IMG/VR virus record: IMGVR_UViG_3300032770_000001
Span: 124,001 to 188,000 of that record
DNA: 64,000 nt
Strand: one strand, 5' to 3'
Shown here: positions 2,223 to 15,514 of the stretch, piece after piece
Numbering within the stretch: position 1 is the first letter of the stretch
How the letters are laid out: every line of letters starts with the position of its first letter
The notes under the pieces: model-generated
What the model was told of the DNA's origin: nothing
The model's database searches: none
Seen by the model: only the letters and a program-made list of their open reading frames with translations
Translations under genes and position numbers: made by a program

Positions 2223-3280
2223 AAATCTATCAGCGAGTTGCGGAACTCTACGTCAAGCGGATCAATGAGGTCTTCACGTCCGAAGACACCATGAAGGCTG
2301 AATTCTACAAGATGTTCCCCTTCCAGCCGGACAAGAATGGCAAAATGGTGGAGTCCATTGAGTTCAGCCGCACCGACCACTGGAATGCTATTCTCTGGAA
2401 GATGTTCGAAGATGCGTGGCTTGAGGCCGGGCCGGAAGTGAAGTCTAAGCCGACCGGATATGACAAGCTCACCATCATGAAGTTGATTCATCCGCTTCTC
2501 GACTACAACCTGTTCACGCAGGTCTGCCTGAATCTTCAGGGTTATACTGGCATGGCGTACCGCCTCGGTGATGCGCAGGCTGTACTCAACAAGATCAAAG
2601 GTAGCTGGAAGCACCCGAAGCTCAACCCATTCGCTCCCAAGGTGAAGCGGATCAAGGACGCCAAGGACAAGGATGAGGTCAAGTTCAACAGCATCATCGG
2701 TCGTGTCCGGTCGGTCAACTTGATTGCACAGTTCGACGGACAGTCCAGTTTTCGCGTGACCCCAAAGGGCTCTACTCCGGCGTTTGCTGATAGCCGCAAT
2801 TTATCTATGATCGGCGTCGAGGGCGACCGCTATCTGAAAACTTTGCCGAACCTCAAGCCGTTCTACATCTCATGGCTGCCGGGTACGACGCCACAGTTTT
2901 ACACGTCCAAGGAACAGAACTTTCAAACCTGCGGCAACAAGCCGGGAACAAACCCAATGGTACTGCATTTTCCCGGCATCGAATATCCGATCCTGTCGAG
3001 TTCTGGTGGTGACATCACCAATGAAGTCATGTTCTCCCGGTTCGTCATGTACGAAGTTTTTCATGATTTCGACATCCTCAACGAGACATGTATCATGATC
3101 CCCCGGATGAACTCCGTGCTGGTGGTTACGCAGGTGGACGGTAAGCACATTAAGCAAACATTTGAGCGGTTGAAGGCTCAGTACCCTGTACTAGAATTCA
3201 ACGAAGGTGTACGCTACAAAGAAGAGGAGGCAGTCGATGAAGTGGAAAGTGTTCCGCAATCTCCGTTCGGGGGAGCGTGA
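2216..3280 (+). CDS. Hypothetical protein (about 354 aa)
   Basis: Long ORF; ATG 2216 overlaps the upstream stop region; no motif recognised. Confidence 0.75.
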   Translation: MLEIYQRVAELYVKRINEVFTSEDTMKAEFYKMFPFQPDKNGKMVESIEFSRTDHWNAILWKMFEDAWLEAGPEVKSKPTGYDKLTIMKLIHPLLDYNLFTQVCLNLQGYTGMAYRLGDAQAVLNKIKGSWKHPKLNPFAPKVKRIKDAKDKDEVKFNSIIGRVRSVNLIAQFDGQSSFRVTPKGSTPAFADSRNLSMIGVEGDRYLKTLPNLKPFYISWLPGTTPQFYTSKEQNFQTCGNKPGTNPMVLHFPGIEYPILSSSGGDITNEVMFSRFVMYEVFHDFDILNETCIMIPRMNSVLVVTQVDGKHIKQTFERLKAQYPVLEFNEGVRYKEEEAVDEVESVPQSPFGGA

Positions 3281-3393
3281 TGCAGTCAAACATACGAAAG
3301 ATGGCGAGTCGCATACTTTCTGCCATGATCCACGCAATTGTGAGTGCGTTTGCACTCTCTGTAAACATGCGGCACGTCGCGTGAGAAAACTCC

Positions 3394-3861
3394 ATGCCTA
3401 GCCTCGTAAAACAAATCTCTGATCGGCAGGCATTTGTGGAGAAAGTTATCGCTTTCGTCGGCGATTTGCTCAATGCCAAGGGCAAGGTGCTCAAGCATGA
3501 AGAACACTCGGCGCACTGCTATTCTCTTCATGAACTCGAACTCGATGGGTTCAAGTTTCAGGATGAGGGCTCTTTTACAATGTTCGGCGGCGATGGCGTG
3601 ACGATCTGGTACCAAGGATGGAAGGTCTTTGAGGTCGAATGGCATGACATCAAGAAAGTCGAAGTGAAAGAATTCGACACCAGTATGCCTTGTCCGGATT
3701 GGCGAACCCCATTGAAAAAGCTCATGCGCACGGGCGTAGCACGCATTGCCAAAAAGATTGAAACTACCGAAAAGAAAGCCGCAGCCCATAATCAGAACGC
3801 TATGCAACGGGTGAAGGCACAGATGGATTTGGAAGAGGAAGCTAGGAGGCTCCATGTCTAA
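3394..3861 (+). CDS. Hypothetical protein
   Basis: 155-aa ORF tiling with the next gene. Confidence 0.7.
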   Translation: MPSLVKQISDRQAFVEKVIAFVGDLLNAKGKVLKHEEHSAHCYSLHELELDGFKFQDEGSFTMFGGDGVTIWYQGWKVFEVEWHDIKKVEVKEFDTSMPCPDWRTPLKKLMRTGVARIAKKIETTEKKAAAHNQNAMQRVKAQMDLEEEARRLHV

Positions 3862-4432
3862 ACGTAAATATCGTACAACCTTGCTGAATGGAACGGCTCC
3901 CGAAGGGGATAAGGCGTGGTGCGTACACTGCGATGAATATGCGTATGATGAAGAGGGAAAGGCCATCGGCCCTGATCCCTGCAAACCACACACCTGCGAC
4001 TGCGAATGCCACACTAAGGCTCGTAAGCCGAAGTGCCTGTGTGCCGTAGTGGAAATTGAGAATCCGTGGGATTCCCCGGTCGGCTGCTGCATGGATTGCG
4101 ACTGCTTCTGCCACGTCGCCGAACAGAAGGAAGCAGACCGTACTAAGAAAAAACGAGACGCTCTGTGGAAAGCGGAGTTGAAGCGGCAGGAGGACGAGCG
4201 GTTCAAGAAAGAAGGCGTGCACGACTGGGAGAAGAAAGTGTTGGAATACCTCCTGCTCGATCCTAGCAGTTTGGATTTTAAGTACCGTTCATTCTTGGAG
4301 GCGTTGGCTTTTTCTGACAAAGCCGCCGCAGCCGGGAAGAAAGAGACGGGCACCGCGTTTATGAAACGAATGGCGACCACGCCGTGGGGATCGGTCTTCA
4401 TCGATGTCCACCGATTTCAGCCCGTAAAATAA
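3854..4432 (+). CDS. Cys-rich hypothetical protein
   Basis: 192-aa ORF with CxxC/CxCxCH clusters; ends just before a promoter. Confidence 0.7.
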   Translation: MSKRKYRTTLLNGTAPEGDKAWCVHCDEYAYDEEGKAIGPDPCKPHTCDCECHTKARKPKCLCAVVEIENPWDSPVGCCMDCDCFCHVAEQKEADRTKKKRDALWKAELKRQEDERFKKEGVHDWEKKVLEYLLLDPSSLDFKYRSFLEALAFSDKAAAAGKKETGTAFMKRMATTPWGSVFIDVHRFQPVK

Positions 4433-4446
4433 TTTTCCGCAGGTAG

Positions 4447-4475
4447 TTGACAAAAGTCTGCTACCGTGGTATTCA
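4447..4475 (+). promoter_or_regulatory. Sigma70-type promoter of the Tyr/Leu tRNA operon
   Basis: TTGACA 4447-4452, 17-nt spacer ending TGG, TATTCA 4470-4475. Confidence 0.75.
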
Positions 4476-4491
4476 TATAGTAGAGCAATTT

Positions 4492-4578
4492 ATGAACCGT
4501 GTCTTCCTAGCATCGTTGCGACTGTATAGCTACCTTAGCGGTGGCTTCGGCGAACGTGTGCGTTGGCGCGGTTGGTAA
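4492..4578 (+). CDS. Putative 28-aa leader peptide MNRVFLASLRLYSYLSGGFGERVRWRGW
   Basis: ATG 16 nt after the -10 element; codons CTA, TTG, CTG, TAT, TAC, CTT clustered; followed by a terminator. Confidence 0.7.
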   Translation: MNRVFLASLRLYSYLSGGFGERVRWRGW

Positions 4579-4600
4579 AAGGCTAACAAAACGTTCGAGA

Positions 4601-4635
4601 GAAGCCGCCAAGGAATTGGCGGCTTTTCCATTTTT
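4601..4635 (+). terminator. Intrinsic terminator (attenuator) ahead of the tRNA genes
   Basis: AAGCCGCCAA-GGAA-TTGGCGGCTT 10-bp stem followed by TTCCATTTTT. Confidence 0.85.
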
Positions 4636-4646
4636 ACTGAGATTTT

Positions 4647-4735
4647 GCATGGGTAGTCAAGCGGCCAACGACAGGAGTCTGTAAAACTCCCGCTCTTAGT
4701 GAGCTACGCAGGTTCAAATCCTGCCCCATGCACCA
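4647..4735 (+). tRNA. tRNA-Tyr(GTA)
   Basis: GCATGGG/CCCATGC acceptor stem, GGAGT-CTGTAAA-ACTCC anticodon arm, long variable arm, encoded CCA. Confidence 0.95.
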
Positions 4736-4736
4736 T

Positions 4737-4829
4737 GCACGTCTGGCTGATTGGTAAGGCAGCGGGCCGTAACCCCGTCTCACCCCAAGGGGTGACTCGA
4801 TGGAAGTTCGATTCTTCCGGCGTGCACCA
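4737..4829 (+). tRNA. tRNA-Tyr(GTA), divergent copy with C33
   Basis: GCACGTC/GGCGTGC acceptor stem, loop CCGTAAC, long variable arm, TTCGATT T-loop, CCA. Confidence 0.85.
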
Positions 4830-4835
4830 AATTTT

Positions 4836-5063
4836 ATGAGAGTCGTTCAGACAGCATTGACGAAGAGAACCGAGACGGGCACCGCCCATCTCATCGCTTG
4901 GCTCCCGGTTGATCCGCGAGTGAAGCGCGGCACTGTTGTGTCGTTGGACAAGGACGACTCGAATCGCTGGACGGTTGAAGCGCAGTACGCAACTCAAGAG
5001 TCAGAGGAAATTAACGACAAATGGGGATTGAGGCTGCCGAAGTCGCAACGCACCGAGCGGTAA
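4836..5063 (+). CDS. Small hypothetical protein inside the tRNA array
   Basis: ATG just after tRNA-Tyr; 75 aa. Confidence 0.6.
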   Translation: MRVVQTALTKRTETGTAHLIAWLPVDPRVKRGTVVSLDKDDSNRWTVEAQYATQESEEINDKWGLRLPKSQRTER

Positions 5064-5267
5064 TTCAGTACGACGACGGCAAATCGCCGAAGTCGGACAA
5101 AGACAAGGTGCCGCAGTGCACGCGCCGTGGACGCCCGTTAGGGTTCTACGTGCTGCTGCCAGACGGCACCGAACGACCGCTGAACATCGGGTTCATGCGT
5201 GTCGGTGAGATGAGTGCTCTTGAGAGCCTCTTAAACGAGATAATGTGCTTTCAAGGGCACATGACAT

Positions 5268-5345
5268 GCGCAGGTGATGGGAACTGGCATACCTAGTCGA
5301 ATGAGATTCGGCTGTTTGTGGGTTCGAAGCCCACTCTGCGCACCA
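5268..5345 (+). tRNA. tRNA-Leu(GAG), short variable loop
   Basis: GCGCAGG/TCTGCGC acceptor stem, GTCGA-ATGAGAT-TCGGC, 5-nt variable loop, TTCGAAG T-loop, ACCA. Confidence 0.8.
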
Positions 5346-5391
5346 AGATATGGTAGACTCCGTGGTATTAGTTAATCATGAGGTCTGCCAC

Positions 5392-6180
5392 ATGAAGCTG
5401 AAGTACACGAAGGAAATGTTAGAGCCGTTGGTGCGAGAGAGCACCAGTTTTCGGCAGGTCATTGACAAGCTGGGTATACGTCAGGGCGGCGGCACTCAGG
5501 CTAACCTTGTTCGTCGCATTAAGGCGCATGGATTAGACACGTCTCATTTCCTCGGACAGGCGCACGGTCGCGGTAAGCTTCGCGTTCGTTTAATTGCTTC
5601 GGAGGTTCTCGTCAATAATCGGACAGGTCGCAGAGAACACACCGATGTGCTTAGACGGGTGATGTTGGAATCGGGCGTCCCGTACCACTGTGAGCTATGT
5701 CCTAATGATGGAACTTGGCAGGGCCGACCGATAGTTTTGGAGATCGATCACCGGAACGGAAACAATCTGGATAATCGATTGGAGAATCTTCGATTCCTCT
5801 GTCCGAACTGCCATAGCCAACAGGTGACGGATGGTTCGAAAAATATTGCACTTCGTGAATTTGAGAAAAAACAAGGCTGGGTTTTGAAGGATAGTACGAC
5901 GCCAACGGAGTTCATGGCTAAGCACTACGAGGAATTGGCTAATAAAGTGCGCGAGCGATATCCGGATATGGCGTCAATGTTGGAGAGAATTGCGGATAAA
6001 GTCCGCTCCTACCTCAGCATGAACAAGGCAACGGTTCGCGTGTTCATTCGTGCTGACGGACAAGGCGCTACTTTTTATGTGCAGGGCGATGAGGAATGTG
6101 ATGCGATTGCAAAAGTCCGCGATCTGGCTCGCGACCTCACGAAAGAAGCGCAGGAGGGTACAAGATTTCGTTTAGTTTGA
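5392..6180 (+). CDS. HNH endonuclease with a C-terminal extension
   Basis: CELC...LEIDHRNGNNLDNRLENLRFLCPNCH; N-terminus of the kind seen in tRNA-linked phage HNH genes. Confidence 0.9.
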   Translation: MKLKYTKEMLEPLVRESTSFRQVIDKLGIRQGGGTQANLVRRIKAHGLDTSHFLGQAHGRGKLRVRLIASEVLVNNRTGRREHTDVLRRVMLESGVPYHCELCPNDGTWQGRPIVLEIDHRNGNNLDNRLENLRFLCPNCHSQQVTDGSKNIALREFEKKQGWVLKDSTTPTEFMAKHYEELANKVRERYPDMASMLERIADKVRSYLSMNKATVRVFIRADGQGATFYVQGDEECDAIAKVRDLARDLTKEAQEGTRFRLV

Positions 6181-6229
6181 TGTGCTTTGTTGTATCAACG
6201 TCAAGTTTTGATGTAACAAAGCACATCGG

Positions 6230-6315
6230 GCCGGAATGGTGGAATTGGCAGACACACTCCGTTCAGCGCGGAGCGGTTAACAGCCATGGGGGTTCAAGTC
6301 CCCCTTCCGGCACCA
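6230..6315 (+). tRNA. tRNA-Leu(CAG)
   Basis: GCCGGAA/TTCCGGC acceptor stem, CTCCG-TTCAGCG-CGGAG, long variable arm, ACCA. Confidence 0.9.
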
Positions 6316-6319
6316 AGTT

Positions 6320-6405
6320 CGGGTCGCGGCGAATGCGAGGGATGTTTTCCGGAAAACGCTACCTCGGTCACGCCGATAAAAACCGCGTGATGAGCGACCT
6401 GACCA
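6320..6405 (+). ncRNA. tRNA-like RNA with an 8-bp terminal stem and an ACCA end
   Basis: CGGGTCGC/GCGACCTG plus ACCA; internal helices GAGG/CCTC, GTTTT/AAAAC, TCACGC/GCGTGA; no T-loop consensus. Confidence 0.55.
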
Positions 6406-6409
6406 TTTT

Positions 6410-6495
6410 GCGGCTGTGGTGGAATGGCAGACACGCAGCGTTGAGGGCGCTGTTCTCGAAAGGGAGTGAAGGTTCAAGTCCTTTCAGCCGCACCA
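6410..6495 (+). tRNA. tRNA-Leu(GAG), canonical
   Basis: GCGGCTG/CAGCCGC acceptor stem, CAGCG-TTGAGGG-CGCTG, long variable arm, ACCA. Confidence 0.95.
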
Positions 6496-6540
6496 GTTTT
6501 AGTACGTTTCCGATTTTCGGAAAATCGGATTTGACAAAAT

Positions 6541-6619
6541 GCGTGGGTGAGGCAATTAGGCAGACCTCTTACGCTTAGAACGTAAGGTTTTGGGGGTTCG
6601 ATTCCCCCTCCACGCACCA
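6541..6619 (+). tRNA. tRNA-Leu(TAG), short variable loop
   Basis: GCGTGGG/TCCACGC acceptor stem, TTACG-CTTAGAA-CGTAA, 6-nt variable region, ACCA. Confidence 0.9.
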
Positions 6620-6624
6620 GTTTC

Positions 6625-6702
6625 GCCGGGATGATGCAATTTGGCAGACATCTTCGCCTCAAAATCGAAGTTCTGCGGGTTCGAGTCCCGCTCCCGGCAC
6701 CA
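6625..6702 (+). tRNA. tRNA-Leu(CAA), short variable loop
   Basis: GCCGGGA/TCCCGGC acceptor stem, loop CTCAAAA, 5-nt variable loop, ACCA. Confidence 0.9.
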
Positions 6703-6765
6703 AACCTCTCAAAACAAAGCACTTAAACCTAGCTAAAAACGACTCCCCGCAGGTAGAATAAGGGT

Positions 6766-6993
6766 ATGGAAATCACCTTGGCTACCATCATCTCGGCGGA
6801 ACTCGCGGCACAGGAAAAGCAGATTCCTCTTCCGGTCGGTGCAGTCATGATCGGCAAGCTGTTCACAGTCATCGAAAATGATGGCTCAGCCGCTATCGCC
6901 GAAGAGGTCACTGATGCTATACTGGCTGCGCGTGTTCGCCTGACGCCGGAGCATCAAGTCGGACAGAAGGTGCGATTCGTCCATTTCAACTGA
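6766..6993 (+). CDS. Small hypothetical protein, possibly leaderless
   Basis: TAGAAT 6 nt upstream of the ATG. Confidence 0.65.
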   Translation: MEITLATIISAELAAQEKQIPLPVGAVMIGKLFTVIENDGSAAIAEEVTDAILAARVRLTPEHQVGQKVRFVHFN

Positions 6994-7002
6994 GAGGCTC
7001 TC

Positions 7003-7182
7003 ATGTCGATCCCCGTACCGATCACCAAAGAAGAAGTCAAGAAGATCACCAGAGAACTCAAGAAGCCGCAGGACGTGATCTGTCTTGACGTGGACTCCCA
7101 CCTTAAGACCCTGCTCGTTGGGCAGAGCATGTTGCTGCTCGGCAAGACCGTCAAGGCAAAAATCGTCAAGGGTTACAAATGA
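7003..7182 (+). CDS. Small hypothetical protein (59 aa)
   Basis: GAGG RBS; MSIPVPITKEEVKK...; ATGA overlap with the next gene. Confidence 0.6.
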   Translation: MSIPVPITKEEVKKITRELKKPQDVICLDVDSHLKTLLVGQSMLLLGKTVKAKIVKGYK

Positions 7183-7499
7183 AGCGCGGCCTGTGGGAGA
7201 TTTTGGTTCCGGTCGTCAATAACCGGGGCAAGAAAATCCCTGTCAAATTTCATCAGGGTTGGGACGCCAAGGTGCGTGCCATCAGCGGCGGCTTGACTAT
7301 CCGTAAGCCGGAGAAGGGTCAGTGGGTTCACCCGGAATCGAAGTCCCTGTTCGCCGAGAAAATGATCCCGGTGAAATTCATGGGCACCCGTGACGAGGCG
7401 GACCAGATCGCACAGATGACGCTGGAGTATTACGACCAGCAGGCGGTCATGTGCTACAAGATCGCGGAAGAAGTCATCATGAAGGTTCGTTCCAGCTAG
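7179..7499 (+). CDS. Hypothetical protein
   Basis: 106-aa ORF, translationally coupled. Confidence 0.7.
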   Translation: MKRGLWEILVPVVNNRGKKIPVKFHQGWDAKVRAISGGLTIRKPEKGQWVHPESKSLFAEKMIPVKFMGTRDEADQIAQMTLEYYDQQAVMCYKIAEEVIMKVRSS

Positions 7500-7511
7500 G
7501 TATTATCTAGT

Positions 7512-7793
7512 GTGGATGACCGCGACACGTTCGACCGCAAGTGCGTAGAGTTGCACATGGCGGTCTATTTTCACATGCAGGCGATTCAGTTCGCCGACGA
7601 GCGCAACGCCGAGCCGGGGGAGATGCGTGAACTCCTGAAACGGCGAACCGATCTGGTTCAGGAAGCGTTGGATTACGTCTACGAGCATTGGGAGTATCTG
7701 GACGAGCCGACCAAGAAAGATTGGGAAGCTGCGGCTGCGGAGTTCCCACTAGCGAGAGAGAATGAAAACAGCGAAGCTACCGACGAAGATTGA
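7512..7793 (+). CDS. Helical hypothetical protein
   Basis: 93-aa ORF; GGTATTA 6 nt upstream of the start. Confidence 0.65.
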   Translation: MDDRDTFDRKCVELHMAVYFHMQAIQFADERNAEPGEMRELLKRRTDLVQEALDYVYEHWEYLDEPTKKDWEAAAAEFPLARENENSEATDED

Positions 7794-8409
7794 CAGTTTC
7801 CGGGGCGTATACCGCTTCCTGTCGAACTTCTACGAGAACTGCCCGGTGAAGCTGTGGGTGAGCACCAAGGGCAAGGTCTTTGCGAATTACGATGGGCTCT
7901 ACGGAATTGTCGAGCACATCAACTCGTTCAATCATCTGCCGGACGATCATCCGGATCGCGATTTTCTGTACTGGATTGAGACTTACGACAACGTCGAGAA
8001 TGCGTATCAGGCGGCGAAGTCCCTCGACATAAACGTTCGTGAGAAGTTCCGTGTTCGCGGCCTGCGTCCGTGGGATGCGAAGAAGCTTGGCGGCACAGTG
8101 AAACTACGTCCTGATTGGGATACAGGCACCGGGACTATGCCGCCGTTTAAGATTGTGGTCATGCTCGGTTTGCTGATGCAGAAATTTGAGCCGACCATGC
8201 TACGGCGTCGTCTGCTTTCAACGATGACGGCTGAATTGATTGAGGGCAACAACTGGCACGACACGTATTGGGGCGTCTGCGACGGGAATTGCAACGAAGG
8301 TCCGCATGAACCGTTCGGCACCAACCATCTCGGCAGGCTGCTGATGATCGTGCGAGGGTATCACGGAGGTTTGTACGATGGCACGAGTATTCTTACAGCG
8401 CGTCAGTGA
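7762..8409 (+). CDS. NADAR (YbiA-like) family protein
   Basis: FLSNFY, ENAYQAAK, LRPDW, LIEGNNWHDTYWG, NHLGRLLM. Confidence 0.9.
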   Translation: MKTAKLPTKIDSFRGVYRFLSNFYENCPVKLWVSTKGKVFANYDGLYGIVEHINSFNHLPDDHPDRDFLYWIETYDNVENAYQAAKSLDINVREKFRVRGLRPWDAKKLGGTVKLRPDWDTGTGTMPPFKIVVMLGLLMQKFEPTMLRRRLLSTMTAELIEGNNWHDTYWGVCDGNCNEGPHEPFGTNHLGRLLMIVRGYHGGLYDGTSILTARQ

Positions 8410-8560
8410 CGCGCTGGATTGGCTGTACGAGTTCCGGATTCCGATTGTTCTGGTGATCCTGCTCGTCCTGATGTTTGCGTTTCATAGCTGCGAGTTCCGC
8501 ATTTCGATTGATTCGCGCCCTTCGGAGACGACGACCGAACAAGGTGCTCGAAAATAATTG

Positions 8561-8589
8561 TTGACAGTGAATCGACTTTCTGGTATTGT
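8561..8589 (+). promoter_or_regulatory. Sigma70-type promoter of the Pro tRNA operon
   Basis: TTGACA 8561-8566, 17-nt spacer ending TGG, TATTGT 8584-8589. Confidence 0.8.
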
Positions 8590-8694
8590 ATATGTGTAGT
8601 CGGCCATGCGACAAGCTTCCTTCTAAACTTGCTCATTGGCGAACAAAAACAGCTTTCGCGATATCCGACTCATATATTAGGAGCTAGTCTTCAA

Positions 8695-8772
8695 ATGACA
8701 TTGATGCGACCAACGCCGACGTTTCGACCGTGCACACCTACCGTGCGCGGGGGAATCGGACACACCCTTTAG
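8695..8772 (+). CDS. Putative 25-aa Pro/Thr-rich leader peptide MTLMRPTPTFRPCTPTVRGGIGHTP
   Basis: AGGAG upstream; Pro codons CCA, CCG, CCG, CCT, CCT; followed by mutually exclusive hairpins. Confidence 0.6.
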   Translation: MTLMRPTPTFRPCTPTVRGGIGHTL

Positions 8773-8870
8773 GGTTCCGGTCGCACCCCGCGCTGCTAGG
8801 CGACGGGGCTCTGGCAAGTTGTGAATTTCCCAACATTACTGCCATTTTTACCCCGTCCTTGTGCGTAAGT

Positions 8871-8945
8871 CAGGGCGTGGTGTAGTGGTTGCATCCCGCA
8901 TTTGGAATGCGGTGGTCGCTGGTTCGACCCCAGCCGCCCTGACCA
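8871..8945 (+). tRNA. tRNA-Pro(TGG), divergent
   Basis: CAGGGCG/CGCCCTG acceptor stem, CCGCA-TTTGGAA-TGCGG, ACCA. Confidence 0.9.
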
Positions 8946-8950
8946 ATCAT

Positions 8951-9027
8951 CAGGGTAGAGTTGGGTCTGGTTCAATCCCCGCCTCGGACGCGGGTGTTCG
9001 CGGGTTCAAATCCCGCTGCCCTGACCA
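8951..9027 (+). tRNA. tRNA-Pro(CGG), divergent
   Basis: CAGGGTA/TGCCCTG acceptor stem, CCCGC-CTCGGAC-GCGGG, ACCA. Confidence 0.85.
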
Positions 9028-9043
9028 AATTTCTGAGGTCAGT

Positions 9044-9202
9044 ATGTTTGAGGCGAGTGAGTGGCGGCATAAAGGTTGTGGTGGTCAGCCCTGTGAGTTT
9101 GAGCCGGGGCGGTGGGCTTGCACGGGGTGCAAGCGTGCATGGTACGCTGGAGCGAACTTTTTCACGTACCTCGCAAACGTGGTCTTTGAAAAGAGAGTCT
9201 GA
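9044..9202 (+). CDS. Small Cys-containing protein (52 aa)
   Basis: MFEASEWRHKGCGGQPC...CTGC; short, support is weak. Confidence 0.4.
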   Translation: MFEASEWRHKGCGGQPCEFEPGRWACTGCKRAWYAGANFFTYLANVVFEKRV

Positions 9203-9350
9203 GGTGGAGCGACAGAGGTGGGCAAGTGGCATCGCTGCCTGTGTCGTTGTACGAAGCGTGGGGGCTTGCTCCTGCGTTAGTCCACAGTACAGCCTGCCCA
9301 ACCGATGCCGGATGGCTGCCGAGTCGCCCATAAATTTCGTTTCGAGGAAT

Positions 9351-9427
9351 CAGGATGTAGCTTAGCTTGGTAAAGCGCGTGCTTGGGGTGCACGAGACCG
9401 GGAGTTCAAATCTCCCCATCCTGACCA
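9351..9427 (+). tRNA. tRNA-Pro(GGG)
   Basis: CAGGATG/CATCCTG acceptor stem, CGTGC-TTGGGGT-GCACG, ACCA. Confidence 0.95.
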
Positions 9428-9459
9428 AAAATTTGAGAAGTAACAAGACCGAGGAAGGT

Positions 9460-9516
9460 ACATGGATGCTGGGGCGGTGTGCGCACACGTGAGTTCAATG
9501 CTCACTCCATGTACCA
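9460..9516 (+). ncRNA. 57-nt mini-tRNA (acceptor stem, T-arm and CCA; no D-arm or anticodon loop)
   Basis: ACATGGA/TCCATGT plus ACCA; GTGAG-TTCAATG-CTCAC T-arm. Confidence 0.55.
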
Positions 9517-9586
9517 TCGGATATTCCGACACGCTAAGATTGTACGGTGCGTGACATCGAGTGGAAGTCTCGAAACAGGTTTTTGA

Positions 9587-9658
9587 TGCGGGGTAGTGTA
9601 GTAGCGCACGGAAGTCTCATAAACTTCCAGACCAGTGCGACTCTGGCGACCGCAACCA
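9587..9658 (+). tRNA. Degenerate tRNA(CAT), Met or Ile2
   Basis: GAAGT-CTCATAA-ACTTC anticodon arm, short D-arm, T-loop TGCGACT, mismatch in the acceptor stem, ACCA. Confidence 0.7.
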
Positions 9659-9661
9659 TTT

Positions 9662-9737
9662 CGGTGTGTAGCTCAATGGCTAGAGCACTCGGTTTGGGGC
9701 CGAGGGGTTGGGGGTTCGAGTCCCTCCACGCCGACCA
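9662..9737 (+). tRNA. tRNA-Pro(TGG), canonical
   Basis: CGGTGTG/CACGCCG acceptor stem, CTCGG-TTTGGGG-CCGAG, ACCA. Confidence 0.95.
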
Positions 9738-9752
9738 TTTTGGAGAACGAAC

Positions 9753-10413
9753 ATGATTGTTGAAATTCGAGCAGCGGAAGGTGGAGATGACGCAAAGCTT
9801 CTCGTGTCCGACCAACTCACGATCTATGCGAGATTGGCGGCTCGGAGGGGTCTTTGAGTTTGAGATAACCGAAGAACGTCCCGGCATAGCGGTGTTTCAG
9901 GTGACGGGACAGGGAGCCCCGGCGTTGTTTGCAAATGAGAGCGGGGGGCACCGTTGGCAGCGAGTTCCGCCGACCGAACGATACGGACGACGGCAGACAT
10001 CGACAATCACTGTCGCAGTTTTCGAGGAGCCGAAGGTCGAAGAGATCAACATTCGTGCTCAGGATTTAGAGTGGGATACGTTCCGGAGCCGTGGTAAGGG
10101 CGGACAGAACGTTAACAAGGTCGAGACGGCTGTTCGCGTGACGCACAAGCCGAGTGGCTTGGTCGTGCGTTGTGAGAATGGCCGTAGTCAGTGGCATAAT
10201 AAGCGAACCGCTTTGCAGATTCTTGCGGCACGGTTGGAAGCGCGAGATCGAGAGCAGAGACAAAGCGTAGTGGTTGCAGATCGTCGGTCGCAGATCGGCA
10301 CAGGGCAGCGAGGCGACAAACGTCGTACAGCAAACGAGCGACAGGATCAAGTCACGGATCATGTCACCGGGCAGAAATGGCGCTATACTGATTACGTGAA
10401 GGGGAACTGGTAA
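9753..10413 (+). CDS. Class I release factor homolog (RF1-like PxT, GGQ, no N-terminal domain 1), expressed through a +1 frameshift at CTT-TGA 9852-9857
   Basis: ORF0 MIVEIRAAEGGDDAKLL...RRGL* (9753-9857); the +1 frame continues with RVPPTE, GGQNVNKVETAVR, RSQIG; GGAG RBS at 9742. Confidence 0.9.
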
Positions 10414-11024
10414 TGGAACAGTATCCGAGTATCGACGGTAGCAGCAAAGCACCCATAGGGGTTCCGTGCATCGCTTTTTATAAGTACGACGGCTCTAACC
10501 TTCGATGGGAGTGGAACCCCAAGAAGGGCTGGTTCAAGTTCGGTACGCGGACGCAGTTGTTCGGTAAGGATGATCCGTTGTGGGGCAAGGCGGTGCCGAT
10601 TTTCATGAACCAACTGGCGGATGAGATCGTGTACCGGGTCAAGCACGTGGAGCGGGGCTGTCAGCGGATCACGGCGTTCACGGAGTTTTTCGGATCGGGG
10701 ACATTCGCCGGACAGCACCCGGAGATGACTGGCGGCAGCGAGGAGAAGGAATTGAGGCTCTTCGATGTCTACCTGTTCAAGCGGGGCTTGATGAAACCTC
10801 GGCAGTTCGTGAAGAGTTTTGGCGATCTACCGCAGGCGGCTCAGGTGATCTATGATGGAAACCTGAACCGACAGTTCATCGAAGACGTTCGGATGGGGCT
10901 GTACCCAGTGAATGAGGGGGTGGTTGCGAAGGGTGACGATTTCATGGTGAAGATCAAGACCTACGCATACCTGAAGCGGCTGAACGAAGTTTACGGAACT
11001 GCATATCGGAACTATTGGGAGTAA
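10413..11024 (+). CDS. ATP-dependent RNA ligase-like nucleotidyltransferase
   Basis: KYDGSN, EFFG, FDV, EGVV, KIKT motifs; TAATG overlap with the release factor gene. Confidence 0.75.
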   Translation: MEQYPSIDGSSKAPIGVPCIAFYKYDGSNLRWEWNPKKGWFKFGTRTQLFGKDDPLWGKAVPIFMNQLADEIVYRVKHVERGCQRITAFTEFFGSGTFAGQHPEMTGGSEEKELRLFDVYLFKRGLMKPRQFVKSFGDLPQAAQVIYDGNLNRQFIEDVRMGLYPVNEGVVAKGDDFMVKIKTYAYLKRLNEVYGTAYRNYWE

Positions 11025-11100
11025 TTTTGAAGGCGATTTTTCAGTTTGTTCGCAGGATTTTTCGCCGGGGCGAGTATCGTCCTATAGGGTGTTGGTGAGG

Positions 11101-11177
11101 CGGGGATTAGCTCAGCTTGGTAGAGCGCACGCTTCGGGAGCGTGAGGTCGCAGGTTCGAATCCTGCATCCCCGACCA
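11101..11177 (+). tRNA. tRNA-Pro(CGG), canonical
   Basis: CGGGGAT/ATCCCCG acceptor stem, CACGC-TTCGGGA-GCGTG, ACCA. Confidence 0.97.
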
Positions 11178-11216
11178 ATATCAAACCCTTTAGATAGACC
11201 GATATTTGGAGTCCCC

Positions 11217-11642
11217 TTGGCAAACGACGATAGTTTTTTTGAAGGTGGAGAGCGGCAGGAGAACCTGAACCGCCATAACGCCCGGAAGGGTGGGTATGAC
11301 CCGTTTAGGGTCACCGCAGGTCAAGAAAGACGCGGTGAGCGTATTACGTGGGTCGATGTCTGGCTGGCTAATCCAGACGGAGCCGCCAATCACGATGAGG
11401 CTGAGGCACTCTCGGTAGGCGACGTAATGAAACACGTAGCGTCAGAGAACGATTTGTATGTAGGTTTTGAGAAAGAACTGGCTGAGGTTCAGCGAGAGTC
11501 TTTCGATGAGTCAGGTGTCAAGCTGGCGAACATGGGGTCGAGAGAGTTCTTCAAAGACTCCCCACCCCCGGCACCAGTACCCGCCCCACGTGTGGCGGCA
11601 CCAGTGAAGAAGTCGGATGACGATTTCTTCCCAAAATTTTAA
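11217..11642 (+). CDS. Acidic hypothetical protein
   Basis: TTG start after GGAG; Pro-rich tail ending DDDFFPKF. Confidence 0.5.
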   Translation: MANDDSFFEGGERQENLNRHNARKGGYDPFRVTAGQERRGERITWVDVWLANPDGAANHDEAEALSVGDVMKHVASENDLYVGFEKELAEVQRESFDESGVKLANMGSREFFKDSPPPAPVPAPRVAAPVKKSDDDFFPKF

Positions 11643-11643
11643 C

Positions 11644-11721
11644 GCCTGTGTAGCTCAGACTGGCTAGAGCGCCCGTCTCATAAGCGGGAGGTCGGGGGTT
11701 CGATGCCCTCCACAGGCACCA
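11644..11721 (+). tRNA. tRNA(CAT), elongator Met or Ile2
   Basis: GCCTGTG/CACAGGC acceptor stem, CCCGT-CTCATAA-GCGGG, ACCA. Confidence 0.92.
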
Positions 11722-11909
11722 GTTTTAGGGAGACCGGGAACCTGCGGGCCCTTCCGAGGCTATAGCACCAGCGGCAACGGTGATTAACTGCCCAAACACA
11801 GTATCGGATACCCGGCAATTCTATTCAACAGGAGGATGAAGCAGATGGCTAACCCTAGCATCACCGTACATACCGTGTAAGGTGTGGACGGTGGGAGGTA
11901 AAAAGCCAA

Positions 11910-12227
11910 ATGCGTCACCCTCGCACCCGCGACGAACGTCGCGCTGTACGCGAGCAGATCATTGCTCGTCGCAAATTTATCGCAACCCAGATTTGGGACA
12001 TTCCGTCCTACGTCCGCCCTCCGCATGAAGGCGAATGGAACCGTTGGTCGAAGCCAGAGGAATGGGAGCCATTTCAGTGGGGTCGCTACCACAAGTGGAA
12101 CATGAACTGTGGCGATACCATGTGTCATGGTGCGAAGTATTTCAAATGCGCTTCCAAGCGTCGTAAAGCACGCAAGGAAGCCGAGTCAACCGCCGAGTTT
12201 CGTCGTCGAAATAAGGCCATCGATTGA
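11910..12227 (+). CDS. Basic hypothetical protein
   Basis: 105 aa, Arg/Lys/Trp-rich; GGAGG upstream. Confidence 0.65.
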   Translation: MRHPRTRDERRAVREQIIARRKFIATQIWDIPSYVRPPHEGEWNRWSKPEEWEPFQWGRYHKWNMNCGDTMCHGAKYFKCASKRRKARKEAESTAEFRRRNKAID

Positions 12228-12252
12228 CAATGAAAAGACTTTGGACTAGCGT
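12224..12252 (+). promoter_or_regulatory. Possible sigma70 promoter of the ncRNA array
   Basis: TTGACA 12224-12229, 17 nt, TAGCGT. Confidence 0.45.
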
Positions 12253-12309
12253 ATTATTTATTGCGGGGTCTGGTTAAACCCTAGTGGCGATGACCACTCC
12301 CCGGTTTTA

Positions 12310-12505
12310 CCCCGGCACCCGATACGCAACGGGGCGCTAGTGATTAGGAAGGGTCGAGGCGAACTGCGTGCCCCCAAGGTGGGGCTAGCCGAAAGCCCGG
12401 ATAACGTCCGACGTGGTGCCCGGTTCTAGTCAACCGTCGTGCGTCTACCTTTCGGGGAATTACAAGTACCCGAAAGGACGTGATGATGCAGTGCACTTGC
12501 CGGGG
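12310..12505 (+). ncRNA. Structured RNA A (about 195 nt, class unknown)
   Basis: Closing stem CCCCGGCA/TGCCGGGG; CCTTTCGGG/CCCGAAAGG; GCCCC/GGGGC. Confidence 0.55.
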
Positions 12506-12526
12506 TTCTTTGATCTTTGATAGTTT

Positions 12527-12762
12527 TAGAGTCGAGTGGCCCGTGATTCAACTGGTTCAGTGGTTTCAGTAAGAGGGTCGAATGGCCTGTCAGGGACAAA
12601 TAGATACTCCCTGAGCGATGTTAGACCGCTATCCCCAGTATAAAAAACGCAGCAGCGGGGGCAGTATCCGTAAGGACTGCGGGAGGCTCCACGAAAAGGT
12701 GCTAGACAACCTGTGGGAGGCCGTATCGGGGTTCTAGCTAAACCGACCTGTGCTCGACTCTA
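12527..12762 (+). ncRNA. Structured RNA B (about 236 nt, class unknown)
   Basis: 11-bp closing stem TAGAGTCGAGT/GCTCGACTCTA; flanked by T-runs. Confidence 0.65.
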
Positions 12763-12770
12763 ATTTTTAT

Positions 12771-12862
12771 GGCGGATGCCCGGATAGCGTAAGCAGTCAC
12801 GTGAAAGTCGTGTTAACAGCCGGGGCGGGGATGTTGGCGTAAGCCAAGCGAACCATCCGCCA
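12771..12862 (+). ncRNA. Structured RNA C (92 nt, GNRA loops, ends in CCA)
   Basis: GGCGGATG/CATCCGCC closing stem; GTAA, GAAA and GTAA tetraloops. Confidence 0.6.
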
Positions 12863-12867
12863 AGGTT

Positions 12868-12939
12868 TTGCCGCTGTGGTATGAAACGCTACCAAATGGG
12901 CACGGTTCCGAAAGGACGCAATGGCCCTGCCAGCGGCAA
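12868..12939 (+). ncRNA. Structured RNA D (72 nt)
   Basis: TTGCCGCTG/CAGCGGCAA closing stem; TCC-GAAA-GGA hairpin. Confidence 0.55.
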
Positions 12940-12948
12940 CGTTTTTGA

Positions 12949-13025
12949 TGCGGGGTGGAGCAGTCAGGTAGCTTGTCGGGCTCATAACCCGAAGGTCGGC
13001 GGTTCAAATCCGTCCCCCGCTTCCA
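12949..13025 (+). tRNA. Initiator tRNA-fMet(CAT)
   Basis: Three G-C pairs in TCGGG-CTCATAA-CCCGA; unpaired 1:72 (U:U); CCA. Confidence 0.9.
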
Positions 13026-13029
13026 AGTG

Positions 13030-13318
13030 TTCGCCGCCGTGGGTTGTTAGTTGTACTCAGAGTGCCGTCAGGAACAGCAAGATCGTACTAGTACCTGAGA
13101 GCGCAACCCACGGTTTAGAGGCGATTGCCGTCACCTGCGGATGTAGTACGGTCTGGGCGTCAGGTGCGCCGGGTCGGTGACCCAGACCGGAGCGACATCG
13201 TTGACCGGACATTCCGGTTTCGTTAGCAGGTCCTCATGGGACATCAGCATGGTGCCTGAGTAGTGCTGAAGTTCGAGGAACCGCGAAAGCGTGAAACCTG
13301 TGAAGCGATCCTCAGGCC
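13030..13318 (+). ncRNA. Structured RNA E with an H-type pseudoknot
   Basis: CCGTGGGTTG/CAACCCACGG; crossing helices CACCTG/CAGGTG and CGGTCTGGG/CCCAGACCG. Confidence 0.6.
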
Positions 13319-13331
13319 GATCTTTGAAAAG
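13319..13331 (+). promoter_or_regulatory. rRNA-type boxA-like element
   Basis: GATCTTTGAAAAG between two structured RNAs. Confidence 0.55.
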
Positions 13332-13332
13332 T

Positions 13333-13482
13333 TTGCGGCGGCGTTCCCGGTGTCCCGTCAATAGACTGGTTCCTGACCGGATACGTGAGTAATCGTTCTT
13401 CAAGGGGTGAAATAAAAGAACGGCGCAGAACAGGTTCCTGCGCGTGGGGCTGTGATTTTCCAGCTACTACCTCTCGCCGCAA
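13333..13482 (+). ncRNA. Structured RNA F (150 nt)
   Basis: TTGCGGCG/CGCCGCAA closing stem; GCGCAG/CTGCGC and CGTTCTT/AAGAACG hairpins. Confidence 0.55.
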
Positions 13483-13489
13483 TATAACA

Positions 13490-14025
13490 AATCTGCAAGT
13501 TGCATTCCGATGCCCGAAGCGCCCGATGAGGGTTTGCGGACGGTAGCGTGACTTGCGGAGGGTAGGTGAACGGCTTCACAGCCGCCGTCGAAAGACGGGC
13601 AAGTCCGCCGTAAATTCGGGACGACGTTCACCCGGTCAGGCACTACTAAAACAGAACCGTGGGGTGCCGTCAGTCGAGAGACTGGATGTTTCTGATTGCG
13701 CATGGCATGGCGAGGTCTCCCTATGTTTGGACGGAGGCAGGCCCTTTTCGACAAGGGACATACGTCAGAGCGGAATCACGGTGGGTATGTGGTTGGAACC
13801 ATCCATGTAGTGGCCTGACGCCTAATTTCAGTTTCCGGTCGTGGCGGAAAAGAGACGATAAACAAATAGAGACGCTAAAACTCGCTGAGAGGATGTACCC
13901 TGATTTCGACAGGGATTCTCAGCCTGTGAGACTCTGTAGGTAGCACCCACGTCTGACAGATGTTAGTGGCTCGAAAGAGCAGCAGAGTCATGCACCGTGG
14001 AGAATCGGGAATCGGTGCCGACTGG
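13490..14025 (+). ncRNA. Large ornate RNA (about 540 nt; GOLLD/ROOL-like candidate)
   Basis: Many nested helices including a long-range 13635-13646/13807-13819 pairing, GNRA loops, no credible CDS. Confidence 0.65.
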
Positions 14026-14103
14026 AAGATTTTTGGAGACAACATGAATAGCACTCACACCCCGACCGGATGACCCTTGCTCATCCTTCGGAGGTAAGGT
14101 AAT

Positions 14104-14361
14104 ATGGCATGTGACACCTGTATCTTTCTGAACAACGTTCGGACCCGCCCGGTAGGGAAGGGAAAGGACGAGCAGAAAGGCGAGAAGCTGGAGCCCTGCT
14201 CCATGAAATATGCCTGCAATCCGTTTTGGGACGGAGCGCAGGGAGTGGGCAAGGTCGTGACTGAGTCGTACTGTGCGACCTGCTCGGAAGTAGCTGACAA
14301 ATGTGGATGCACGCAAGGATTGCGTGTGATCCGGCAGCGCAAGCTGCATTATGCTCGGTAA
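14104..14361 (+). CDS. Cys-rich small protein
   Basis: 85 aa with CxxC repeats; GGAGG upstream. Confidence 0.55.
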   Translation: MACDTCIFLNNVRTRPVGKGKDEQKGEKLEPCSMKYACNPFWDGAQGVGKVVTESYCATCSEVADKCGCTQGLRVIRQRKLHYAR

Positions 14362-14363
14362 CC

Positions 14364-14450
14364 ATGAAGATTGACGACGGAACATTGATGGCGATTGGAC
14401 TGCTGGTGTTTGCAGCGTTTTACATTCTGTCTCCATTGATCGTCGGGTAA
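14364..14450 (+). CDS. 28-aa single-TM peptide
   Basis: MKIDDGTLMAIGLLVFAAFYILSPLIVG. Confidence 0.45.
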   Translation: MKIDDGTLMAIGLLVFAAFYILSPLIVG

Positions 14451-14451
14451 G

Positions 14452-14645
14452 TTCGTGCGGCTGACTCGCCTTGAGCAGGGCTATCTTAGGTGCCCTGAGC
14501 GCACACAAGCTTCAGCAGCGACGGAGTTATGACCCGTAGGGGGTTATGAGCCCTTTGGCTGCTGAGAGGGAAGTGAGTACCAGTGGCAACCGCGAAAGCG
14601 CCGATGCCCACGCCCTCCGTCCAGTTGCCTACACGTGCGCAACCT
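14452..14645 (+). ncRNA. Pseudoknotted structured RNA G
   Basis: GCGCAC/GTGCGC closing stem; CAGCAGC/GCTGCTG; loop-loop GACGGAG/CTCCGTC; GGCAAC/GTTGCC. Confidence 0.6.
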
Positions 14646-14707
14646 TTGCTTTTGGACGTGAATATTAAAATGCGAAGGAACGTCATCATAACGTGGTATT
14701 AGGTAAT

Positions 14708-15034
14708 ATGGCTGCTGAAATTCTCGAAGACGTTTACTTGCACATTGGCAACGGTGGGGTCCAGTTTCAGGTCCACCGGGACAATAAAGGGCGTTGCCTC
14801 CTGAAGGTTGGAGCATCGCATTTCGGTCAGAAGACCAACACGATGGAGTTGCTTGTGACTCCCGATAGCCTGCGGCAGATCGGCGAAGCTTTTGTTCGCG
14901 CATCGCAGCAAGAGTTCCCCGGCAAGCCGTATGTTTACAGCGCCGAGGTTCCGGTGTACACTGGTTCTGGTAACGCCGAAAGCAGCACGGGCGGCGATGA
15001 ACCAAAGCAGGAACCGCAGCAATTGACAGTTTAA
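14708..15034 (+). CDS. Hypothetical protein
   Basis: ATG 6 nt after GGTATTA; 108 aa. Confidence 0.7.
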   Translation: MAAEILEDVYLHIGNGGVQFQVHRDNKGRCLLKVGASHFGQKTNTMELLVTPDSLRQIGEAFVRASQQEFPGKPYVYSAEVPVYTGSGNAESSTGGDEPKQEPQQLTV

Positions 15035-15090
15035 CGTTCCCGAACGCAAACCGGGTGGTGGATCGTATCACTGAGACGTGATGCCCCTGC

Positions 15091-15120
15091 GGGGCAACCA
15101 AAAGTTGCCCCCGTTGTTTT
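15091..15120 (+). terminator. Intrinsic terminator
   Basis: GGGGCAAC-CAAAA-GTTGCCCC followed by CGTTGTTTT. Confidence 0.65.
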
Positions 15121-15132
15121 ATCAAAGATTTT

Positions 15133-15315
15133 ATGGCAGAAACGACCGAACGTTATATCGTGACTCACCACCAGCCATCTGAGTGGTACAACGTTTGGGA
15201 TAAACTGTGGACGACTGATGTCGTAAAAGTCAGCAGTCTCACAGGACGCGGCAAAGAGATTGCCGACAAGATTTGCGCAGACTTGAACGCTCACCCGTTC
15301 CCGCCTGCGGAATGA
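15133..15315 (+). CDS. Small hypothetical protein
   Basis: 60-aa ORF. Confidence 0.55.
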   Translation: MAETTERYIVTHHQPSEWYNVWDKLWTTDVVKVSSLTGRGKEIADKICADLNAHPFPPAE

Positions 15316-15488: not shown

Positions 15489-15514
15489 AATTTCTCAATC
15501 ACACAATTCAAATT

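Follow-up and report, generated by a model that had tools for sequence, protein, structure and literature searches.

The Tyr/Leu tRNA operon and its leader

The 64,000-nt stretch of viral DNA analysed here (the window, whose position 1 is position 124,001 of the 455,708-bp viral contig IMGVR_UViG_3300032770_000001) encodes 16 tRNA genes clustered by amino acid (ARAGORN), one cluster of which comprises two tRNA-Tyr and five tRNA-Leu genes and is preceded by a promoter, a short open reading frame (ORF) and an intrinsic terminator (Table 1). This Tyr/Leu leader is proposed below to be a ribosome-mediated attenuator of the tRNA operon, on the basis of a computational analysis of sequence, folding and comparison with related phages.

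The promoter was missed by a generic promoter scan because its -10 hexamer ends in A. The pattern TTGACA-N(15-18)-GTATT occurs at exactly two sites in the 64 kb against 0.04 expected, one upstream of the Tyr/Leu leader and the other upstream of the Pro tRNA cluster. Transcription is predicted to start near 4482, and the first ~100 nt of the predicted transcript cover the 28-codon leader peptide. Among codons 6-15, each Leu isoacceptor (TAG, CAA, CAG, GAG) is represented by one codon, and both Tyr codons are present. An original prediction, made from the sequence alone, had placed the promoter, the 28-codon ORF, the terminator and the Tyr/Leu tRNAs where the sequence, a terminator scan and ARAGORN now locate them; its reading of codons 6-15 is likewise confirmed, as is the absence of TTA from the leader and of Leu(TAA) from the operon and the window.

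The first tRNA-Tyr begins 12 nt past the terminator tail. Rfam confirms six of the seven Tyr/Leu tRNAs, the exception being the Leu-GAG at 5268. Three tRNAs with Leu anticodons (5268-5345, 6541-6619 and 6625-6702) measure only 78-79 nt and have no long variable arm of the kind usual in bacterial tRNA-Leu, and similarly short ones are found in relatives, e.g. at 3796, 3951 and 4036 of contig L119; their charging identity is uncertain. In the 463-kb relative (L268 5210-5299; L198 1110-1199), a 90-nt tRNA of class-II shape lies among the Leu tRNAs and is called Phe(AAA) by ARAGORN, an anticodon assignment which is doubtful. The Leu tRNAs of the window are split by small ORFs and an HNH endonuclease ORF (5350-6180), whereas the same seven tRNAs are contiguous in L119 (770 nt, 3346-4112), where the HNH ORF is absent. 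The HNH insertion may carry a promoter-like site of its own (5356-5371, with GACTCCGTGGTATT at 5356-5369), and a long inverted repeat follows the ORF at ~6181-6228.

Table 1. Positions of the leaders, their helices and the tRNA genes in the window and in related contigs (designated by L and a number)
Feature	Sequence	Position	Strand	Details
Tyr/Leu leader promoter	Window	4447-4475	+	TTGACA 4447-4452, 17-nt spacer, TATTCA 4470-4475 after TGG (extended -10, 4467-4475)
Tyr/Leu leader ORF	Window	4492-4578	+	ATG 4492, TAA 4576-4578, 28 codons; ATG 17 nt past -10
Sensor codons 6-15	Window	4507-4536	+	CTA, TTG, CTG, TAT, TAC, CTT
Hairpin 1:2 (anti-antiterminator)	Window	4484-4584	+	5' arm 4484-4534, apical loop 4535-4539, 3' arm 4540-4584
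Antiterminator 2:3	Window	4540-4609	+	outer helix 4540-4548:4601-4609, middle 4551-4557:4591-4597, innermost hairpin 4571-4576:4582-4587
Intrinsic terminator 3:4	Window	4599-4635	+	13-pair stem 4599-4628 (7 G-C), 4-nt loop, U-rich tail to 4635
Tyr x2 and Leu x5 tRNAs	Window	4647-6702	+	
tRNA-Tyr(GTA) x2	Window	4647-4735, 4737-4829	+	ARAGORN, Rfam
tRNA-Leu GAG	Window	5268-5345	+	ARAGORN; 78 nt, no Rfam hit
tRNA-Leu CAG	Window	6230-6315	+	ARAGORN, Rfam
tRNA-Leu GAG	Window	6410-6495	+	ARAGORN, Rfam
tRNA-Leu TAG	Window	6541-6619	+	ARAGORN, Rfam
tRNA-Leu CAA	Window	6625-6702	+	ARAGORN, Rfam
Tyr/Leu leader ORF	L268	3856-3933		463-kb phage
Tyr/Leu leader ORF	L128	2029-2112		
Tyr/Leu leader ORF	L130	1198-1281		identical leader in L136, L137, L140
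Tyr/Leu leader ORF	L127	3503-3583		
Tyr/Leu leader ORF	L119	3199-3279		identical leader in L120-122, L131
Tyr/Leu leader ORF	L135	2121-2204		identical leader in L139, L141
Tyr/Leu leader ORF	L123	4977-5069		
Pro leader (paralogous)	Window	8561-8870	+	promoter 8561-8589, ORF 8695-8772 preceded by AGGAG
Pro leader helices	Window	8728-8808		A 8728-8735:B 8743-8753; B:C 8786-8793; C:D 8800-8808
Pro leader ORF	L119	7268-7339		leader 7268-7430
Pro leader ORF	L135	6239-6310		leader 6239-6437
Pro leader ORF	L136/L169	12136-12210		leader in L136 12136-12244
Pro leader ORF	L198	4752-4823		leader 4752-4855
Pro x5 tRNAs	Window	8871-11177		
tRNA-Met	Window	11644		
tRNA-Met, initiator-like	Window	12949		
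Phe x2 tRNAs	Window	15412-15594		

Alternative folds of the leader RNA

The entire leader (4482-4646) folds better than its shuffles (z = -5.3) and contains three alternative helices, i.e. hairpin 1:2, antiterminator 2:3 and terminator 3:4. Hairpin 1:2 is long and imperfect and encloses the entire ORF, with a minimum free energy (MFE) of -45.4 kcal/mol (z = -3.7; 0/200 shuffles). Because the ORF lies within this hairpin, segment 2, the 5' strand of the antiterminator, is held by segment 1 with its Leu/Tyr codons, and the classical 1:2/2:3/3:4 scheme is therefore complete. The his/trp/pheST attenuator geometry had already been recognised in the original prediction, to which the folding adds this ORF-spanning hairpin.

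The antiterminator of the window (dG -36.4 kcal/mol, z = -5.0) is built from the two complementarities originally described, of which GGTGGCTTC (4540-4548) pairs with GAAGCCGCC (4601-4609) through one G-U pair, while the pairing of CGAACGT (4551-4557) with ACGTTCG (4591-4597) is perfect. The stop codon TAA (4576-4578) is located at the loop of its innermost hairpin. When the terminator 5' arm pairs with sequence upstream of it, the gain is -16.1 kcal/mol, compared with -6.0 +/- 2.5 kcal/mol in shuffles (0/400), and the terminator itself has a dG of -19 to -23 kcal/mol.

The effect of a translating ribosome was modelled with a 28-nt mask moved codon by codon along a transcript ending before the terminator 3' arm, such cut transcripts being used because the equilibrium terminator probability under masks (~0.9) does not discriminate in the window. 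In this model the antiterminator is the MFE structure when the ribosome stalls no further than about codon 13 in the window or about codon 16 in relatives, and it is lost with the ribosome over codons 17-23. The naked RNA of the window, cut at the same place, prefers hairpin 1:2 over the antiterminator. Masked folding, which had been suggested as a check of the original prediction, thus favours it for stalls to about codon 13 on the cut transcript and fails to do so at equilibrium, where the terminator prevails under any mask; the decision thus has to be a kinetic one, as with trp.

Conservation of the leader in related phages

Relatives were reached through flanking genes, namely the upstream 192-aa protein (3854-4432), an alignment of its homologues (49-99% identity) and a 75-aa ORF (4836-5060), and the sample is therefore unbiased towards conserved leaders. 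They are huge-phage contigs from IMG/VR and from metagenomes of peat, bog and soil, in which the Tyr-Leu tRNA cluster is syntenic. Eight distinct leaders were compared, those of the window, L268, L128, L130, L127, L119, L135 and L123, the flanking proteins that led to them being 49-79% identical. GenBank phage records contain no match to the Tyr/Leu leader, its tRNAs or the neighbouring 192-aa protein and show no DNA-level likeness, and a scan of genome_contigs found nothing. Two further scans yielded no relative: the promoter pattern returned at least 116 loci in viral contigs, mostly by chance and with no relative among them, and the core GACTGTATAGCTNNCTTAG added only L143 and L145, both AT-rich chance matches. 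At several of the promoter-pattern loci the same hexamers stand directly against tRNAs in unrelated phages.

In most relatives the -10 block TGGTATT(A/C) is kept at a constant distance upstream of the leader ATG; L123 and L268 lack the TG and read GTATTAT. The ATG, the reading frame and the TAA stop are kept in all eight leaders, which have 25-30 codons and differ in length by whole codons, e.g. an extra TAC (Tyr) in L135 compared with L119; the other two frames are closed by 1-3 stops each (seven variants checked). The N-terminal half of the peptide is conserved, with a core of the type L-Y-S-[Y/L]-L-S in 8/8, whereas the C-terminal half is variable and keeps its RNA pairing. As far as the sequences tell, this combination is the usual signature of a leader peptide.

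CTA, CTG, TTG and CTT/CTC, along with TAT and/or TAC, are present in every one of the eight leaders, and the Leu isoacceptors TAG, CAG, CAA and GAG together with Tyr-GTA are present in every operon fully contained in its locus. CTA accounts for only 5% of phage Leu codons, and the chance of drawing all four Leu classes without TTA at phage Leu usage is 0.03 for the window with its four Leu codons and 0.03-0.19 for the others (seven variants). Leaving aside the start Met, Leu and Tyr constitute 21-38% of the residues, compared with a background of 11.4% (per-peptide p = 0.0002 to 0.08). L123, the leader that diverges most, encodes 9 Leu and 2 Tyr in the 29 residues following Met (p = 0.0002), its codons being rearranged with the four Leu classes kept. 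Seven further leaders thus retain both the ORF and its Leu/Tyr codons. The one-to-one match of codons and tRNAs originally claimed holds for the four Leu classes and Tyr in 8/8 leaders, and is slightly overstated in view of an unmatched TTA in L130 and of Ser enrichment lacking a tRNA.

All of the 8/8 leaders have a terminator hairpin (-15 to -19 kcal/mol) with a U tract behind it, the stem sequences differing. It lies a few to ~27 nt upstream of the first tRNA, or, in L268, upstream of a 75-aa ORF that precedes the tRNAs. All eight leaders also form a three-tier antiterminator, consisting of an outer helix between segment 2 and the terminator arm, a middle helix, and an innermost hairpin with the stop codon at its loop (dG -25 to -36 kcal/mol, z = -3.3 to -5.3). 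The gain in pairing of the terminator arm is -11.9 to -16.1 kcal/mol, versus -3.8 to -6.0 kcal/mol when the upstream part is dinucleotide-shuffled (0-4/400 per leader).

Compensatory substitutions, sought in related leaders as the original prediction had advised, are found in all three alternative helices. The terminator arm reads CCGCUC in L127 and L123 but CCGCCU in L119, L128 and L135, and its variable column changes together with segments 2 and 4, giving a three-way covariation of segments 2/3/4 (GAGCGG/CCGCUC/GAGCGG in L127 versus GGGCGG/CCGCCU/AGGCGG in L119 and L135). The middle tier pairs UGUUCGA with UCGAACA in L128 and UGUUCAAA with UUUGAACA in L135, and is strand-swapped in the window as CGAACGU:ACGUUCG. 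RNAalifold reports nine compensatory pairs for hairpin 1:2 and the terminator. A pair count over these two structures in the eight leaders finds 90% of cells paired versus 79% in shuffles and 16 double-change pairs (0/500 shuffles), with 31-50% pairing when partners are slid by 1-3 columns as a control, though its alignment was fitted to the structure being counted, which flatters the numbers. Neither MAFFT nor covariance-model alignment brought segments 2-3 of the window, L123 and L127 into register; per-sequence energies against shuffles and an explicit pair table were therefore used, as column-wise counts would understate the antiterminator. All the sequence elements of an attenuator are hence present and conserved, and its three alternative helices covary.

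A second leader upstream of the Pro tRNA cluster

The second promoter-pattern site precedes a Pro leader whose ORF of 23-25 codons is found in five variants (window, L119, L135, L136/L169 and L198) with conserved helices; L169 and L198 were revealed by a scan with a Pro leader 14-mer, which is too short for specificity. The window ORF contains the codons CCA, CCG, CCG and CCT, and CCA, CCG and CCT occur in all five variants, matching the downstream Pro isoacceptors TGG, CGG and GGG. In L136 two flanking Thr residues are lost while Pro is kept. The stop codon is again at the loop of a small hairpin, the stem of which differs in each lineage and is always paired. Helix B:C encloses this stop hairpin (GCGCGGGG:CCCCGCGC in most variants, GCGUCGGGA:UCCCGACGC in L198) and competes with helix A:B, and helix C:D comes next.

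A terminator scan of the Pro leader found none, and no U tract follows C:D. In L136, L169 and L198 (two sequence lineages), strand D coincides with the first 5-6 nt of the first tRNA-Pro, which belong to its 5' acceptor strand. The predicted probability of the acceptor stem in L136 is 0.00 with no or a late ribosome and 0.8-0.99 with the ribosome on codons 10-13, where 7/100 shuffled leaders also sequester the acceptor; in L198 it is 0.00 and, with the ribosome on codons 2-10, 0.7-0.99, where 26/100 shuffled leaders do so. Because of these shuffle controls the evidence for acceptor sequestration is only moderate. The folding suggests, as a hypothesis, that the Pro leader acts at the level of tRNA folding or processing. 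The broader idea that this group of huge phages carries a cognate-codon sensor for each tRNA cluster, with termination as the output for Tyr/Leu and translation-gated tRNA folding or RNase P processing as that for Pro, is tentative and on balance doubtful. Translation-gated folding or RNase P processing of a tRNA would, if true, be a control point not described before.

A possible third leader before the Phe tRNAs was judged too weak, with one conserved Phe codon and no terminator. At that site, an 18-codon ORF (15345-15401) preceded by AGGA stops 10 nt short of tRNA-Phe and includes a hairpin (15381-15396); its homologue in L208 (ATG 9802) keeps the motif LDLFTSP and the hairpin, with one Phe codon only.

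Proposed mechanism and alternative explanations

The Tyr/Leu element is interpreted as a ribosome-mediated (leader-peptide) transcription attenuator before a phage tRNA operon, with a probability of about 0.7. We infer that the leader ORF is translated, that stalling at its Leu/Tyr codons is the signal and that the terminator works efficiently in the host. The leader transcript would start from the promoter near 4447-4475, with a ribosome translating the leader behind RNA polymerase. If Leu/Tyr codons 6-15 were promptly decoded, the ribosome would cross segment 2 and reach the stop codon. As the stop codon is inside the antiterminator, the latter could not form with the ribosome there, hairpin 3:4 would arise and transcription would end at the U tract (4624-4635), upstream of the tRNAs; with no ribosome loaded, hairpin 1:2 would be expected to lead to termination as well. 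When a charged Leu isoacceptor or Tyr-tRNA was scarce, the stalled ribosome would cover segment 1 and leave segment 2 free to pair with the terminator 5' arm on its emergence, allowing read-through into the two tRNA-Tyr genes and the tRNA-Leu genes.

Since the products of the operon decode the sensor codons, such a circuit would be a direct negative feedback, or homeostat, for Tyr and Leu isoacceptors, and the phage would probably make these tRNAs only when its ribosomes run short of them. A shortage could be caused by codon-usage mismatch, starvation or host anticodon nucleases; a host anticodon nuclease, as opposed to plain supply-and-demand feedback, may be the trigger.

Several points weigh against this interpretation. 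The terminator of the window stays favoured at equilibrium even with segment 1 masked (P = 0.9), and in the mask model TAC 14 and CTT 15 are too near segment 2 for antitermination. The Shine-Dalgarno-like AGAG of the leader ORF (4482-4485) is weak, and the 5' untranslated region is just ~10 nt. Leu and Tyr are 6/27 residues of the window peptide, an enrichment which by itself is without significance (p = 0.08), and Ser is as enriched as Leu in several leaders, though the operon has no Ser tRNA. In L130 codon 4 is TTA, for which the operon lacks a Leu-TAA tRNA. The conservation of codons may partly reflect RNA structure, because the conserved Tyr/Leu/Ser codons also form the apical hairpin, and the eight leaders represent just about five or six independent lineages. 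Finally, the distal Leu tRNAs of the window genome may have independent expression from the promoter-like sequence at 5356-5371, for which reason leader control of the four distal Leu tRNAs is less certain in the window than in relatives with a compact operon.

Some of these points bear on alternatives. The conserved core nucleotides that also build the apical hairpin, the modest amino-acid enrichment that extends to Ser, and the three alternative helices, for which the support is better than for any other part of the element, would fit a terminator/antiterminator switch worked by a small RNA, by an RNA-binding protein of phage or host, or by tRNA bound directly as in a T-box, with the ORF being incidental or a folding aid. 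Against such a switch, the ATG, the frame and a TAA at the innermost loop are kept in 8/8 leaders in spite of whole-codon indels, and the stop-in-loop design recurs with fully compensated stems in the otherwise unrelated Pro leader; in addition, neither T-box nor any other Rfam family is matched even at E up to 10, and the leader of ~150 nt is shorter than a T-box, which makes an explanation without the ribosome quite unlikely. The locus could also be read as a separate small gene, encoding a micro-protein or a ~145-nt terminated small RNA (sRNA) behind a constitutive, partly leaky terminator. In that case nothing would be sensed, and the tRNAs would come from unregulated read-through or other promoters. 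From promoter to terminator it is indeed a complete short transcription unit, terminated attenuator RNAs can work in trans in other bacteria, as rnTrpL does (PMC6614838), and L268 has a 75-aa ORF between the terminator and the tRNAs. Yet the gap between the terminator tail and tRNA-Tyr is too short for a promoter, the peptide is not conserved in its C-terminal half, the codon set fits the downstream tRNAs in two independent leaders, and an antiterminator overlapping the terminator arm, which would have no role at a constitutive terminator, is significant in 8/8 leaders; a separate small gene is thus unlikely.

Translation could be involved without any sensing of Leu/Tyr decoding, the attenuator then reporting general translation capacity such as ribosome availability or host shut-off. 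In the mask model slowing anywhere in codons 1-13 frees the antiterminator whatever the codon, and the enrichment statistics are modest, both of which agree with this possibility. The persistence in 8/8 leaders of all four Leu isoacceptor classes, including the rare CTA, and of CCA, CCG and CCT throughout the Pro leader variants argues against it and renders it very unlikely. In sum, the observation behind the original prediction is confirmed, and its interpretation as an attenuator responding to Leu/Tyr decoding is supported by the comparison with relatives.

Comparison with known regulatory systems

Leader-peptide attenuators are well known from enterobacteria, including trpL, hisL, leuL and thrL and the multivalent ilvL and ivbL. 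The phage element shares with the trpL/hisL/leuL/thrL class a short 5' leader ORF, regulatory codons in segment 1, nested 1:2/2:3/3:4 helices and an intrinsic terminator as output, as well as, according to the proposed folds, termination both under fast translation and under none; like ilvL, it mixes codons for more than one amino acid. It differs from the enterobacterial attenuators in being viral, in its position before tRNA genes instead of biosynthetic enzymes, so that its product would relieve the stall directly, in spreading its sensor codons over isoacceptors in place of a run of one codon, and in having the stop codon inside the antiterminator loop and not between segments 1 and 2. The Rfam families Leu_leader, His_leader, Trp_leader, Thr_leader and Phe_leader have no hit at E <= 1 in 3000-17000, and at E <= 10 on 4430-4650 the sole hit is Phe_leader, which scores 15.5 bits (gathering score 55) and covers the terminator alone. 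The T-box model has no match in 3000-17000 (E <= 1) or 4430-4650 (E <= 10). Judged from its sequence, the Tyr/Leu element thus has every structural hallmark of leader-peptide attenuators and is no homologue of the Rfam leader families or of the T-box.

T-box elements bind uncharged tRNA directly, need no ORF and control genes for synthetases, biosynthesis and transport. The phage element would share with them a terminator/antiterminator decision on the charging state of a tRNA and a codon-like specificity, but has a conserved ORF. The attenuator of pheST (with the pheM leader) and those of other aminoacyl-tRNA synthetases respond to the level of charged cognate tRNA; here, too, a component of the translation machinery would be under leader-peptide attenuation answering to charged tRNA, though pheM controls a synthetase and not a tRNA. 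Phage tRNAs are also known as counter-defence, as with the tRNA-Tyr of T5 against a retron effector and with phage tRNAs escaping anticodon nucleases, and replacement of depleted or cleaved host tRNAs may by analogy be common to these and the present operon. To our knowledge, counter-defence tRNAs have been described as part of early or middle phage expression and not as conditionally induced when a sensor detects that they are short.

Control of tRNA genes in bacteria and phages is usually placed at the promoter (growth rate, stringent response, phage temporal programme) and at the processing step. Full-text literature searches, in agreement with the original prediction, found no leader-peptide attenuation of tRNA genes, although such absence is no proof. 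Attenuator-like leaders of the E. coli tRNA-Phe genes, which had been suspected, are contradicted by the monocistronic organisation of pheU and pheV with leaders of 3-4 nt, which hence have no attenuator (PMC7049720). Leader-peptide attenuation of tRNA genes is not known to have been described before, while the mechanism itself is known.

If the proposal is true, no feedback loop for tRNA supply could be shorter, since the stalled codon itself would call for its decoder, and a virus would be monitoring the decoding of single isoacceptors during infection. With such a circuit the phage could respond to scarcity of host tRNAs, to their mismatch with phage codon usage or to their destruction by anticodon nucleases. 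The proposal also offers a concrete, testable explanation of how large phages carrying dozens of tRNA genes could keep them silent while the host pool suffices. Being compact (~190 nt) and modular, the element could serve as a per-isoacceptor reporter of charged-tRNA levels.

Other features of the window

The window also encodes a family-A DNA polymerase and clamp-loader domains. The nearest cultured relative by protein is the jumbo phage Tunturi_5 of Tunturiibacter (Acidobacteriota), with 38% identity in one exonuclease, and the host of the window phage may be a member of the Acidobacteriota. A truncated class-I release factor (218 aa, PCRF and RF-1 domains, 9757-10413) lies inside the Pro tRNA cluster, and weak PHROG matches to an RNA ligase (E about 2e-6) and a phosphoesterase are found in the tRNA region; as context for a response to tRNA shortage these neighbours are only suggestive. 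A NADAR-domain protein is encoded just upstream of the Pro leader (7762-8409), and NADAR proteins also occur in the tRNA regions of relatives.

Between a promoter-like site (12225-12257) and the initiator-type tRNA-Met lies a G+C-rich, ORF-free stretch of ~700 nt (12240-12948) without a match in Rfam. Its part at approximately 12530-12790 is ~80% identical in L119, L208 and L198 and has a consensus fold of 64 pairs, 12 of which show compensatory changes and which include a long-range closing helix; the stretch is a candidate for a large structured phage RNA beside the tRNAs. Another element of 85 nt (9444-9529), located 3' of tRNA-Pro(GGG) and 86% conserved in L119, L198 and L208, has a long acceptor-like stem and a T-arm-like hairpin with no tRNA call by ARAGORN, and may be tRNA-like or a degenerate tRNA. 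The promoter family common to the leaders of the relatives, CCTAGCTAAAA ... TAGAAT, is also present at 6728-6768 and at 4118-4157 of L119. The 6728-6768 promoter ends ~6 nt upstream of the ATG of the next gene (6766), which suggests from the sequence that the mRNA of this gene is leaderless or nearly so.

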